The notes: generated by a model not told the origin, from the sequence alone. A DNA stretch of 64,000 nt from Marsupella aquatica (GCA_973895155.1 OZ316899.1:1573573-1637572); one strand, 5' to 3'; counted from the stretch's first letter, positions 47,513 through 58,778 are shown. Numbers and translations: made by a program.

Positions 47513-48708
47513 GGGTATGATAGCCACGACAGAAAACAGAAAACAGAAAACCTGTTACCAGGGGTTTATTTTATGTTAACAGGGAAATTGTACCTGTTAC
47601 CAATAAGCTTGTCCCTGTTACCAGTTTTGCCTGAACCATAACGTGCATATCCACCACTCTAATGGCATAATTTTTTGGGGGGCAATAAAGTTTAAAACAA
47701 ACAATTATTTTGTGCCATCCGATGGATGAAGTGTACTATCAATCCTCCATTGACACAACAATTTATTGTAGAAGATAAAAAACATGGTATTAGGAGTGTG
47801 CCTAAAGAAACATTCATGCAAATCAATCTATTTTCATCGCCAAATAGTGACCCTTAGAGTGGGACCCACCATAGCACATGTCAATCGTGGAGTCCAAATG
47901 AACCCAATCTAAAGGAGTTGATTAAATGGACCTTGTAACGTCACAAACAAATGACAAATCACATCCTCGAGGCTTTGAAGACAGTAGACAATTTAATCAG
48001 CTTACACATTTTAAATAAAACAAGAGGTCATTCTTCCACAATGCACGTACATAATGAAGCAATGAATATCCGGTTTCCTAGAACCAGCGCCCGGCGCTAA
48101 CCAACAAAGTCTCAATAAAACAACTAAAATATCCGTTGGAAAAAGACAAAATAGGGAATAACCGTTATATTGAACGACGACCTATTGGGCAGTTTCGATC
48201 TCTCTCATAAGCCATTCTAGTTCTGCCTCTCCAGCACAAGCCTGACTTCGCCTAAAGTCAAAATAGGTTGGCTACAAAGAGTCGACTCCTCAATCTCAAG
48301 TTTGAAAACATTTATGTACACCCATTATAGATGTTTGCAAGGCATGTACGACTTGCCACGCGAATGTCGGAGGAAGAAGTCTTCACAAGAGCAAGCGGGG
48401 AAGATATAGATTTGGACGAAGTATGTGCTTGGTGATCGATGGTTCTCATGGGTTCGAATTCGAAATTGCTTTCCAAAAGCATTTCCGGTCTGAACATTCC
48501 ATTCCCCATCCAAACTCATCACTTCTTGTCGTGCAGACTCCATTCGCTTCGTGTGACCCACAGTGAGATTAGACCGAGGCCTTGAGTTCCTCCCATTCCG
48601 ACTACCAAGTCGGAGATTCGACTCCAAAAACCTTATTGTTTCTGGGAACACGTTAACATTTATCCTGAGGTCAAAAGCAGATGGCGTAGATAGACTCAAT
48701 CCTGTTGT

Positions 48709-51700
48709 TCACGCTAATACAAGTCCTTGCTCTTCCAGGAATGTAATTTCAGAAGGAGACAGGCTCGTACCCTTCAGAACAGGCAAAATGTCAGGAAAAG
48801 GAGGAAGCTTCTGAACACCACGACGCGGATGACTCTTGTAACACGCTTGGTTCGGGCAAAACCAAATCATTTCGGAGATGGGTCCGCCCCTGAAGAGACG
48901 ATGGCCCTTCACGACAATTCCGACAACACCTTCAGACAAATGGAAGCCAACCTTCTTGATACGATTTCGACACTCATCGCAATCCGAACTCCCATTCAGT
49001 GTACCATTGCATTGCGGACCTGCTCCATACTTCGATGTCCGTCGCAACTGCCACTGCCCCGGAGGGACATCCTTCTCTAGCACAATCGTGCGTGGAAGTT
49101 GATTCTGAAGTGTTGCTGGGGCACTGAGCGGAGGTTTTGAGGATCTTGTTGTTCGGGTTGTTTGAGGAGTATAGTCCAGTGAATCAGTATCACTCTCTGA
49201 TGTGACCATACCTGAGAGATTCACCACCTTTGTGACAGGATGATCAGAACTTGAGGGAATAGAAGAAAAGTCAGTTCTGTTCAGGTTCTTCCTTTTCAAA
49301 CCACGAGTATTTGGTGTGGTTATTAGAACGGTGTCATGCCGATGGGAATCTTGTGGAGAGACAGTCCCAGTTGCATGTCCCTTCCTCTTCATTGACTTCG
49401 TCATTATATCTCCATTCAGGGGAGTACTTCTTTCCAAATCGAATTCTGCTGCGTTAGATAGAAGCATATTAGTCGCTTCTTCAAACAATCTTGGCAAACC
49501 TGCTTGATCGGCGGAACGGAACGCCAATTCCCATATAGTTGGCCCCTTCCCCCGGTTCAAGCCTTTACGGTATGCACTGTATCCGGCAACTTGAGACAGA
49601 GCACGGTTTTGGTCAACTTCGCAAGCTTCATAAAGACCGACCTTTTTCTTTGTAGCCGAGGCTTTCATGGACGCATGCCTTGATTCTGACCCTGTACAGT
49701 TGGGGATCAAGGCACCTTCCTCAGCGCTTTTGCTCTGCCATACGAAAATGTCAACCGTAAGTAGTATTCTATTACTAGTGCCCGGCGCTGGCAACATAAA
49801 TATGTAGAACAGGCCTGAAATACAATTTCAATGTTTAATACTGAATTCTAACTACATATTGGCTTCAATTTCTTGTACTACTTGTTTTGACGTGTATGGA
49901 GAAAATAACCAGCGCCTGGCGCTAATATGAAGTTGATGAACATTACAGTCTAGATAGATGGATGCCTTACCACTCGAATAAAATTGCCCCACTGGCGCCA
50001 GCGAACAACCCACCAAGATATCCAGCTTTGCAGCATCTTCAGCTTTCCGGGGACACAGTTTCCTGATTGCCACCACACAACAATCTCTCGGGACACCCGG
50101 TATGCTGCCACAAATGATGGAGCATTTCTCAGTTTCTCCCAAAGTCTCCGATGCTCCGATTGACATTCTTCCAGTACTCCTTCCTTGGAATGACGATGAA
50201 AAGATTGATAAAAGTGAAATGCATCAGAGCGCTCCCTCTCCGGGTCCGGGTGTCCACCAAAAAAAACATTTTGCACTGCATTCCATCCAGCTTGTGCATT
50301 GTCGGCCATAAATCCTTGGATGACAACCTCCTGAAGTTCATTTTCTTTGCAAACCTCAATCATCACTCTCCATGCCTTTTCGAAGGACTCAGTGTCTTCA
50401 CCTTTCAACTCGCATGTGAAAATTGTACACAGTGCACGGAAATTGTGGTCGTAGACGTGTGCGCTGAAAGTAAACCAATCCGTGGTGACACGCTGCATCA
50501 CATCGAAACTTATCCAGGCTCCTTCGAGTCTTCCACCCGGTTGCATCTGCCTCAAAAGATCCACACCGGAACCGTGACCTTTCACGGTCATTTTAAAGAT
50601 GTGAGGCCTATCGTTCTGACATCCCTGACCTGGAAGCAAATACCTCTGGAGAAACGGCACATGAATCCTCCTCTGCATTTGCGAGAGAAAATCTAATTCA
50701 CCCCGACCTTTTTGGTCTATCCTAACGCTCCGACAAAGAGATGCAAACTTCTGCGGAGTGGAAAGGACCATCAGAGACTTCCATATTTCAGTTTCTTCGA
50801 TATCGACCATGTCGTCAACATGTTCGCAGAGAGATTTCACTAAGGACCCTGTAGCAGAATTCAAGATCCCTGCCGGTTTTGACAGAGGATTGGCTTCATG
50901 TTTTTTTTTAATTAGATCCTCAGCTATCTTCTTCGCACTCCTACAGAAGGTTTTTCTACCTGGATGGTTGTGCTCACCTATATGAATTGCCAGGCGGGAC
51001 ATATGACTGCATGTTTCCGCATCAAGTAATACTTGGGGGTACATGTAAAACAAACGGGCAGGGCAGTACTTCACACAAAAAGGAATCTGTTCGCAGTAAT
51101 GACAAACAACACCTCCCTCTTCGATGAAAGATCCCACAGCATACTGACCACTGAGCTTTGGAGTACCCTGCCATGCCTTAGCATTTGCCTTCTTCTTCCT
51201 TTGGAAATAGTCACAGGACTTGTTCCTGCATTCAATGAATCCCGTACAGGTAACCTTCCCAAACTGCCAAAGGTTTTTAGGATGAACAGTTGCAGTTGTT
51301 GGAAATATGCATGTCCAAATGTAACAATCTTTGGCACGATCCATGTCCCTAAGCCTAGAGCCTTTAGAGAGCATCTTATCAATGGGCGGCAACTCAAACA
51401 CGACGTTACCATTGTACTTAGTTGGCAGACAGGACACTTGTTCATGCCTGAAATCACCCGTTGATATGAACCGTGACAACTCACTATGACCAGTTGATTT
51501 GAGTAACGTATCCATCGCACTGCGCCGGTACACGACCTCCAACTGCTTAGAGCTTCCCGGAGTCTCAGCTTTCACGACAGCAGGGAGCGGGCTTTTCTTC
51601 TTCGACGGTGGACTTAGAGTACGATCTCCATCCTCACTTGAAGAAATCTCAACCACATCACATGGAACCGGCAGGAAACTGGACAGTCCTGCATGCTGTC

Positions 51701-51956
51701 TTAAACGAACCAAGTACAAGATCCCTGCGTAGAGATGCCAAAACTGTTCACCGTCATCGACATTGAACGTTGCAGCATCCTCGATATCATCAATGGATTC
51801 GAGCTCTCGAACAATGGCCTCAATGTCATTCATCTTCAAATCAAATCTCCTGCAGAGATACCTCTCCCGGACCTGCTTGTACGTATTTTCCATGGGGACG
51901 GGGATAGTCACAATATCTTCAGAACCGAATCGAGAAAGAACGATAGACCGAGACAT
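48709..51956 (-). CDS. MULE DDE transposase with GCM/WRKY-like Zn DNA-binding region; two exons (51956-49971, 49734-48709), ~1003 aa
   Basis: CTGFIECRNKSC...CHYC...CPAR...IHIGEHNHP; catalytic candidates WISFDVM, FMADNAQAG, AFHFYQ and GSESRHAS; phase-0 GTAAGG/GGCAG intron; no internal stops. Confidence 0.85.
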
Positions 51957-57607: not shown

Positions 57608-58069
57608 ATGGCGAGTCAGTATGAGCCAATGGATTGGGAGGCAGCTTTTCGTCCTTCTCGTGTGCGTCCGGAAGAGAGCCATTTCAGCTCTTTTGAATCG
57701 CGGATGGAGACTGAAGAAACTGAAACTTCCACTTTTCGGAACCGTCATGCTCTCCCGTATGATGAGGCTATTAGTCCTGGAGAGAAGAACATCCCTTGGA
57801 TTGTCGATTCCCCTACGCCTCCGTTCTCTAGTCGGTTTTCGTCTCACTCGGGAGTTCTTGTTGATGGGGTACTCCCAATCGATCGAAGAGTACAAGAAAT
57901 GTTCAGGCGAGTTGATTTTAAGGACAGTAATATTCCTAATGAACATTTTACGAGGGCTGTTCGTCGAGGACCTTCAGAGGGATACGTTCGTTTGCGTGGT
58001 CTCGGCTTCAAGAAAGATCGGCGGAGAGAAGCAACAGGAGTGGATGATGATTGCAACTCAGAAAGCTAG
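57608..58069 (+). CDS. Third MULE ORF, ~153 aa, unknown function
   Basis: ATG at 57608 to TAG; lies between palindrome clusters; no recognised domain. Confidence 0.35.
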   Translation: MASQYEPMDWEAAFRPSRVRPEESHFSSFESRMETEETETSTFRNRHALPYDEAISPGEKNIPWIVDSPTPPFSSRFSSHSGVLVDGVLPIDRRVQEMFRRVDFKDSNIPNEHFTRAVRRGPSEGYVRLRGLGFKKDRRREATGVDDDCNSES

Positions 58070-58778
58070 ATGGAAATTTTGTTTTGCTGATCGCTTTAAG
58101 CTAGCGCCGGGCGCTGCTAAAGTTTTCCGGATTTTGTGGCATTGAAGTCGACCTCAGCTCTGGTGTTAGGGTTTTCCCGGTTGTCTACTATTTAGGTTTT
58201 GGCTAGCGCCGGGCGCTATTGAAACGACAACGGATTTTGTGGGAGGGAATGGATCTTGACTATGTTGTCTGGGTTTGGCCGCATCTTGTCTCCAAGAAAC
58301 GACTAGTTTTCTAGTTAGTTTTTGGCTAGCGCCGAGCGCTGTTCATGTATTAGTCAAAAACCTCCGACGGTGTCGACCGTGACTTCATGGATGGGATTTT
58401 TAGGCCAGATTGTTGATGTTGATAACTGCATTTTGTATCACTTAAGCCGAGCGCGTTTTCTATTTTGCGATAATATATGCGAATGTTTTTTCCGGCCTTT
58501 CTTTTCTACTTGTATTTGTCTTGGATTTTGTGTATCTCAATTGGCAGCCGTCTTTTATGTTTCAAAAAATTGTTCCCGTGTTGTTCTTTTATTTATCACG
58601 AGGGTTTGGTGGTTTTGTTTTCTATTCTTGTACTTTCAAATGGAGATTTTGAGACCTTTTTTTAAGATCACTGTTCACGACCATCCAAACACTGTTCACT
58701 GGTAACAGCTCCTTTTAACTGGTACCAGAATTTGTTTCCTGTTACTGTTATCTGTTTGCTGTCGTTTGTAAATTCCCC

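Follow-up and report, generated by a model that had tools for sequence, protein, structure and literature searches.

Palindromic sites dispersed through the non-coding DNA of a putative Mutator-like transposon that encodes a predicted ParB/Srx-fold protein

What reads a short palindrome that a plant DNA transposon carries sixteen times over? The question is raised by a 64,000-nucleotide stretch of Marsupella aquatica DNA (GCA_973895155.1 OZ316899.1:1573573-1637572; this whole stretch is called the window below), in which an autonomous, putative Mutator-like element (MULE) of about 11.27 kb occupies positions 47514..58778. The element carries a transposase gene on the minus strand (48325..52010) and, on the plus strand, an accessory gene of about 1,130 codons (52921..56597). 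An earlier note on this DNA had described a 13-bp palindrome, AGCGCC-N-GGCGCT, and proposed that it is a binding or loading site for the accessory protein or the transposase. We found 10 exact and 6 one-mismatch copies within 48086-58340, which is the number given before; in dinucleotide-preserving shuffles of the 64-kb window the expectation was 0.00 for exact copies and 0.03 for copies with one mismatch. All 16 copies are inside the one transposon (11.3 kb of 64 kb). A two-mismatch search of the whole 64 kb yielded zero further copies of AGCGCC-N-GGCGCT, and thus the window copies form a sharp class. For comparison of the inside with the outside we used the 52.7 kb of flanking DNA and the loci of relatives. 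The motif is absent from the flanking DNA except at 20278-20290, within a non-autonomous mini-element of the same family (296 bp, 20162..20457). The earlier note placed the sole outside copy correctly, but that copy has one mismatch and is not a full one. The six variants in the big element are all transitions, C>T or G>A, as described before, and the mini-element variant is a C>G transversion. The transitions would fit decay of 5-methylcytosine.

Alignment of the 16 copies with their flanks gave the pattern T-rich / R-C-Y-AGCGCC-N-GGCGCT-R-G-Y / A-rich. The 13-bp core stands, but the actual site is longer: its palindrome spans about 23-27 bp, and the flanks are T-rich on one side and A-rich on the other. 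Each of the 12 core positions is retained in 14 to 16 of the 16 copies, the dyad base varies (C6, G5, T3, A2), and past about +/-9 there is only a composition bias (A/T-richness) in otherwise randomised flanks. The perfect 27-bp palindrome reported at 55151-55177 is real, with 13-bp arms centred on an exact copy, and the copy at 52434 has perfect 11-bp arms (52429-52451). In most copies an intact core encloses a randomised centre, and the flanks are unrelated; the three copies near the right end, spaced 102-123 bp apart, have partly similar flanks. Tandem Repeats Finder detected no repeat unit containing the motif. Selection acts on the palindrome core, and the centre and flanks are free to vary. 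The innermost C/G beside the single central base is conserved although a hairpin loop needs at least 3 nt, which argues that the site is read as duplex DNA and not as a hairpin. The conserved innermost pair and the distance between half-site centres of about 11 bp, or about one helical turn, suggest a symmetric dimer on duplex DNA. The palindromes have no Rfam match and a known RNA family was rejected. A host site of the E2F type was considered and dropped because the geometry of the T-run and GGCGC is unsuitable. The name "parS-like" used in the earlier note is an analogy, as the sequence is unrelated to parS.

The placement of the copies agrees with the earlier description. Gene models were built from open reading frames (ORFs), GT-AG sites in the right phase and protein conservation against relatives, with exon extents based on cross-species protein matches. 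The transposase exons are at about 49968-52010, about 48709-49734, and 48325-48699, and those of the accessory gene at about 52921-53672, 53797-55130 and 55321-56597; both accessory-gene introns have GTAAGT...AG boundaries in the correct phase. One exact copy (48086..48098) lies 3' of the transposase stop. Two are found in the transposase intron at about 49735-49967 (49777..49789 with one C>T; 49911..49923, exact). Five occupy the divergent intergenic or promoter region between the two start codons (52011..52920): exact copies at 52236..52248, 52434..52446 (the one with perfect 11-bp arms) and 52644..52656, and copies with one C>T at 52299..52311 and 52582..52594. Three are in accessory-gene introns, one with a C>T change at 53729..53741 (intron 1, 53673-53796) and two in the intron at 55131-55320, namely the exact copy 55158-55170 within the 27-bp palindrome (55151..55177) and a one-C>T copy at 55251..55263. 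The remaining five lie 3' of the accessory gene: exact copies at 57046..57058 and 57152..57164, followed in the right subterminal region by exact copies at 58103..58115 and 58205..58217 and a one-G>A copy at 58328..58340. None of the 16 overlaps an exon, and the probability of this is 3e-7 with a conservative exon set, or 9e-9 when two unconserved downstream ORFs are counted as exons. These ORFs (56661-57011, 116 aa; 57527-58069, 180 aa; both plus strand) lie between downstream palindromes and were considered as a third gene, but they are unconserved in Riccia, have no family match and are probably non-coding. A 16-nt tandem repeat, GTTGGGGACGACGATA, is present in about four copies at 57298-57363, also between palindromes 3' of the accessory gene.

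Is the palindrome a peculiarity of this copy? The relatives compared were environmental and read-archive contigs, several of them short, and two full elements of Riccia sorocarpa. Their common layout is a transposase and an accessory gene that are divergently transcribed, and palindromes recur in the same non-coding places as in the window. In L001 (transposase 44% identical) there are seven copies of the window-type motif, four upstream of or at the ORF start and three in the intron that follows the first large exon, a placement that matches the window. In L005 and L007, whose accessory exon is 63-65% identical, the window-type motif sits in the intron that follows the ParB exon; between the window, L005 and L007 these introns differ in length and cannot be aligned except for the motif. 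L002, L003 and L006 (50-59% identical) have TTGCCAGCG-WAA-CGCTGGCAA, in which the outer arm is the same and the centre is 2 bp shorter; it lies in the divergent region in L003, and in L002, a contig with transposase sequence only, the single palindrome is in an intron. The divergent promoter of L003 (1495-2265, type B) also holds about six copies of the MYB-core-like ACCGTTA/TAACGGT beside its two palindromes. In L004 (40% identical) the form is ATCTCGGCGAG-S-CTCGCCGAGAT, which occurs in two introns and also upstream of exon 1. A metagenome scan added four contigs of about 1.2-1.8 kb (L008-L011), in which a search for short-spacer inverted repeats found no site-like palindrome.

The two Riccia elements, L012 (transposase about 40% and accessory protein about 26% identical) and L013 (transposase about 40% identical), carry the largest arrays. 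In L012 the promoter array is of the form CCGGCGAG-s-CTCGCCGG, and a single form, CCAGCGGA-n-(C/T)CCGCTGG, makes up both the array past the transposase 3' end and the array 3' of the accessory gene. L013 has CCGGCGGA-n-TCCGCCGG and a promoter variant. Counting sites with at most two mismatches from the Riccia motifs (CCGGCGAG-s-CTCGCCGG, CCAGCGGA-n-TCCGCTGG, CCGGCGGA-n-TCCGCCGG), we found 21 in L012 and 30 in L013, with about zero in shuffles. L013 also contains a 95-bp periodic array. Promoter and subterminal arrays differ in their inner bases in both elements (L012, 8509-9354 versus 4015-4254 and 14353-15147; L013, 8543-9210 versus 2851-3892 and 14266-15083), and in L012 the outer arm differs too, which suggests two site classes within one Riccia element. 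One palindrome per Riccia element is in annotated coding sequence (L012 12454, L013 12367), in the linker of the middle and methylase-like regions; the window counterpart of this linker is an intron with two palindromes. L013 has clear terminal inverted repeats (TIRs) and a target-site duplication (TSD), and the L012 ends were deduced from their likeness to the L013 ends.

Placement of palindromes in the divergent region is common to L001, L003, L012 and L013. All subfamily sites can be aligned as YYRGCG-N5-CGCRRR (N3 in one subfamily), with the half-site YYRGCG shared and positions -2/-1 specific to the subfamily. The Riccia elements represent two subfamilies with differing inner bases in one host. 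Because homologous non-coding positions are kept while their neighbours are randomised, and the motif changes in concert by subfamily, the pattern is the signature of sites that co-evolve in cis with a trans factor of their own element. It is a misfit with a host-factor site or a decaying repeat, and the two subfamilies in one host argue in particular against a host factor. The earlier proposal of cognate sites for an element-encoded protein is therefore upheld to this extent: as a cis feature the palindromes are specific to the element, they are conserved in relatives whose proteins are 40-65% identical, and they change by subfamily; the kinship to parS, a GERRxR box and a ParA partner were not found.

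Two element-encoded proteins can be considered as the reader. The accessory protein is predicted to consist of a ParB/Srx-fold domain, a middle region of about 445 residues and a beta-class DNA-methylase-like domain, and Riccia P0163 (1207 aa) is collinear with its whole length. Its first exon has eight close homologues among 5.8 billion proteins, and an exon-1 profile run with HMMER against the full set of 1.84 billion representative proteins returned 452 relatives; annotated relatives of the ParB-like exon are from the liverwort Riccia sorocarpa and from Adiantum ferns. An early AlphaFold2 model of the whole 263-residue exon 1 from 8 sequences was discarded (predicted local distance difference test score, pLDDT, 48). 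Residues 100-263 modelled with a 58-sequence alignment gave pLDDT 92.3 and a predicted template modelling (TM) score (pTM) of 0.87. In a Foldseek search of the PDB, nearly all of the top 48 or so matches were ParB (with CDP or CTPgS), Noc, KorB, PadC, sulfiredoxin or SbnI, with the best match at E 6.6e-3, probability 1.0 and TM 0.44-0.46. These models support with confidence a ParB/Srx fold for the N-terminal domain. Sequence profiles alone found nothing for this domain apart from a weak DGQHR-domain match (E 0.066). A nearly invariant DGNHR stands where CTP-dependent ParB clamps have their GERRxR box. ORF and family searches of the element revealed no ParA or other ATPase ORF, only the transposase and accessory genes.

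At the C-terminus, Pfam N6_N4_Mtase matched the last accessory exon in its C-terminal 57 residues only, at E 4.5e-4 and 20.7 bits against a cut-off of 26.7; the Riccia relatives score 23.7-26.2 bits. With this sub-threshold match excepted, Pfam and NCBIfam recognise neither element protein. The single accessory sequence matched the motif I region of the beta-class adenine methylase DpnA at E 8e-4, and with the family profile the match ran from motif VI through motif I, over about 160 residues (E 2.8e-4). The S-adenosylmethionine (SAM)-binding motif I is recognisable, DWTAGAGGS being aligned to DPFMGSGTT of DpnA. Where the catalytic motif IV, (D/N/S)PP(Y/F/W), would be expected, the window and P0004 have YLPT, and Riccia has DLPT, DMPS or DMPT. 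The domain thus appears to be methylase-derived with catalysis probably lost, and the methylase-like assignment itself is weakly supported by these profile matches. Of the "ParB-MTase-like" protein in the earlier note, the ParB/Srx part is borne out by the model (pLDDT 92) and by Foldseek, and the methylase part is a weak match (E about 3e-4) that lacks the DPPY motif. P0125 of Adiantum capillus-veneris (1176 aa) is annotated as a single protein in which the ParB-like domain is joined to an FCP1/NIF-type phosphatase domain and not to a methylase-like one; two gene models may have been merged, or the fusion may be a different one. The window gene has an in-frame TAA at 54146-54148 where L005 (65% identical) reads CCA, and its product would be truncated after the ParB-like part unless the TAA is read through.

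The transposase had no match among Pfam, NCBIfam and PDB profiles, and only three close homologues (P0001-P0003) were found among 5.8 billion proteins; these and the Riccia loci are 40-65% identical to it. By eye we recognised an FDV...MADNA...FH signature and, in the last exon, a C-terminal SWIM-like CxC...CxH pattern. It is from these hand-read patterns, the TSD and the TIRs that the element is classed as a putative MULE. A 9-bp TSD, CTCGGTAAG, at 47505-47513 and 58779-58787 defines the element limits as 47514-58778. The 9-bp TSD and imperfect TIRs agree with the 8-11-bp TSD and TIRs of MULEs, and the TSDs of the mini-element and Riccia L013 are about 9-10 bp. The TIRs are rich in ACAG(A/T)AAAC and CTGTTACC. 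The mini-element has a TSD of the form GGATGGTC(A/C), and its end is 81% identical over 69 bp to the right end of the big element (58709-58777). Short terminal repeats, ACAG[A/T]AAAC and CTGTTACC/GGTAACAG, were seen at 47514-47640 and 58690-58778 and in the mini-element at 20162-20260 and 20400-20457; they are distinct from the palindromes. The Riccia elements have a different terminal repeat, CTGATATCAG. We consider the terminal repeats (CTGTTACC in the window, CTGATATCAG in Riccia) the likely end-binding sites of the transposase and better candidates for this role than the palindromes.

We infer that the palindromes would be cognate double-stranded-DNA sites of a protein that the transposon itself encodes and that binds as a sequence-specific dimer, with the accessory protein of about 1,130 residues as the favoured reader, and we give this explanation about an even chance. 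The site of about 23 bp would be composed of two YYRGCG half-sites with centres about one helical turn apart, the dyad base being unread. Because the sites occur in the promoter, in both subterminal regions and in introns of the transposase and accessory genes alike, the bound protein would label the entire element as self. By analogy with VANC, the anti-silencing protein of Arabidopsis VANDAL elements, which are also Mutator-like (Hosaka et al. 2017, PMC5735166), the probable outcome would be that this element and members of its own subfamily, but no others, are activated or protected from silencing. As a nucleotide-binding module, the ParB/Srx domain may permit clamping or spreading. As DPPY is lost, the methylase-like domain is more likely a SAM- or DNA-binding module than an enzyme. 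The choice of the accessory protein is supported because separate terminal repeats, present in every subfamily and in the mini-element, offer the transposase a natural place for end binding, because the palindromes are spread over the whole element like VANC motifs in VANDAL21 (PMC5735166), and because the best-known members of the ParB/Srx superfamily load at palindromes. It is also in line with published proposals of self-binding by the ParB-domain accessory proteins of algal transposons (10.1101/2025.02.11.637652; PMC12477816). In the boldest form of this proposal, which we regard as quite unlikely, a bacterial or phage-type ParB-methylase fusion was turned into a land-plant self-marking device. 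A dead methylase module and/or a reader would dock a dimer on the 23-bp palindromes, the inner pentamers (CCNGG, GANTC, AGSCT) would be fossil methylase targets, and the NTP-binding ParB/Srx domain would clamp, spread and shield the transposon from silencing, as a eukaryotic chromatin-level analogue of ParB-parS loading.

Several points weigh against the accessory protein as the reader, and some of them favour the transposase. The ParB/Srx match is at the level of predicted fold (Foldseek E 7e-3, TM 0.44-0.46), and DGNHR is the form of the box seen in DndB or sulfiredoxin-type members, in contrast to the CTPase GERRxR. No helix-turn-helix or other DNA-reading domain was recognised in the accessory protein, and Pfam, NCBIfam and PDB profiles were negative for the middle region. 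With its stop codon, the window copy would depend on protein from other copies. One site per Riccia element is in the annotated coding linker. Transposase and accessory gene are always together among the loci sampled, and covariation of motif with protein cannot separate them. The main rival, less likely but a serious candidate, is that the transposase reads the palindromes through its N-terminal Cys/His-rich (WRKY/FAR1-like) region, for synapsis and/or activation of its own promoter. It co-occurs with palindromes at every locus examined, including the intronic palindrome of L002, the transposase-only contig. Riccia sites cluster in both subterminal regions, and the subterminal arrays of L012 share one motif type and the promoter array has another. 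FAR1 and FHY3, which are MULE-derived, bind CACGCGC, a GC-rich site. The mini-element requires nothing in trans but the transposase and retains one palindrome, although that single copy is degenerate. Sequence-specific activation of cognate copies by a MULE transposase has been reported (10.64898/2026.08.24.746577), and a transposase of this type could do the same here. The distinct terminal repeats of each subfamily, shared with the mini-element, are however better suited to end binding, and the palindromes, instead of being concentrated at the ends, are distributed over introns and the central promoter.

The other explanations account for less of the pattern. It is improbable that the palindromes are host transcription factor sites, or DNA or RNA hairpins, exploited for expression with no element-encoded reader. 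Their location would suit this explanation, as enhancers are often found in places such as introns and a bidirectional promoter; GC-rich palindromes with A/T-rich flanks can extrude as hairpins, and plant LBD factors bind GCGGCG-like sites. Yet the inner bases differ between L012 and L013 in the same host, the motif is missing from the 52.7 kb of surrounding DNA and from Rfam, the bases beside the 1-nt centre are conserved though unable to pair in a hairpin, and one-sided C>T variants would create an A-C mismatch on the transcript sense strand in at least one case (49777). A little less probable again is that the methylase-like domain is a true DNA methyltransferase with which the element marks itself by N6-adenine or N4-cytosine methylation at the central pentamers. 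These are palindromic and type II-like (CCNGG in the window, GANTC in L013, AGSCT in L004 and L012), and GANTC is the CcrM/HinfI site. The DpnA alignment over about 160 residues, a weaker CcrM match and the retained motif I-like G-x-G would also be expected of such an enzyme, but motif IV is YLPT (window, P0004) or D(L/M)P(T/S) (Riccia) with the aromatic residue lost family-wide, the homology is under the Pfam threshold, and CCNGG contains no adenine. It is very improbable that the palindromes are functionless relics of a repeated unit duplicated within the element. The partly similar flanks of the three right-end copies and the 95-bp array of L013 are of the kind expected from duplication. 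Most copies, by contrast, keep an intact core between unrelated flanks, and the motif persists at homologous positions across 44% protein identity while the surrounding introns are unalignable.

The element and its mini-element are both nested within retroelements. The big element is inserted in the gag region of a Ty3/gypsy-type retroelement, with a flanking zf-CCHC ORF at 46833-47363, and Ty3/gypsy-type sequences (reverse transcriptase, RNase H, integrase, zinc-knuckle gag) surround it at 59409-59477, 40041-40109, 42326-46614, 46833-47363 and 58668-59267. Within the element the CpG observed/expected ratio is 0.84, or 0.89 for its non-coding DNA minus the motifs, compared with 0.62 for the transposon-rich DNA around it; either the element is younger, or it has had less exposure to CpG decay. 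A search of a phage collection with the element gave zero matches.

By its proposed function, the closest known system is VANC and its motifs; by its parts, the closest are the ParB-domain accessory proteins of algal transposons. Like VANDAL elements, this is a Mutator-like element with an accessory gene and short motifs concentrated in its own non-coding DNA, and in VANDAL elements too the motifs differ among related subfamilies, leading to self-specific recognition there. Both features, enrichment of motifs in the element's own non-coding DNA and variation by subfamily, were found in the present family. The differences are that VANC is an unrelated protein with neither a ParB/Srx nor a methylase-like domain, that VANC motifs are short, non-palindromic and often tandem, and that binding and hypomethylation were established by experiment there, whereas the present family is known from its sequence alone. 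Among algae, self-binding has been proposed for the red-algal Plavaka protein PAG3 (ParB and a 2-oxoglutarate oxygenase), which adjoins inverted-repeat arrays (10.1101/2025.02.11.637652), and for the accessory protein of Ectocarpus Sola1-1_Ec32 (ParB and a DNA methyltransferase; PMC12477816). These proteins share with ours a ParB-type domain fused to a DNA-modifying-type domain, a length of about 1,100 aa, an orientation opposite to the transposase, and inverted repeats near the gene. Compared by description, they belong to the EnSpm/Plavaka and Sola1 superfamilies of algae and ours to a Mutator-like family of bryophyte-type land plants, in which the sites are dispersed in introns and promoter and combine a shared half-site with subfamily-specific inner bases, and methylase motif IV is lost.

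ParB-parS, Noc-NBS and KorB-OB resemble the present system in the ParB/Srx fold and in having multiple palindromic sites on their own replicon or element; here there is no similarity to parS, DGNHR takes the place of GERRxR, no helix-turn-helix was detected, there is no ParA, and the host is a eukaryote. The subterminal transposase or TnpA motifs of En/Spm and Mutator and the sites of FHY3/FAR1 are likewise short motifs repeated in non-coding ends or promoters with an element-encoded reader, but they cluster at the ends and do not take the form of 23-bp palindromes, and the present elements have separate terminal repeats. In the open-access literature we found no description of the land-plant family, its defined site or its subfamily variants.

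Mechanistic detail on how transposons recognise themselves and escape silencing comes essentially from one system, VANC in Arabidopsis VANDAL elements, and the algal proposals of ParB self-binding came without site data. The locus described here and its relatives make that proposal testable, as they provide a defined 23-bp site, a shared half-site, at least five natural specificity variants and known positions, in a protein family of more than 450 members that reaches liverworts and ferns. If the binding is true, it would provide orthogonal pairs of protein and DNA site for chromatin targeting, and it would mean that plant transposons acquired sequence-specific self-recognition a second time and independently, out of prokaryotic ParB and methylase parts.

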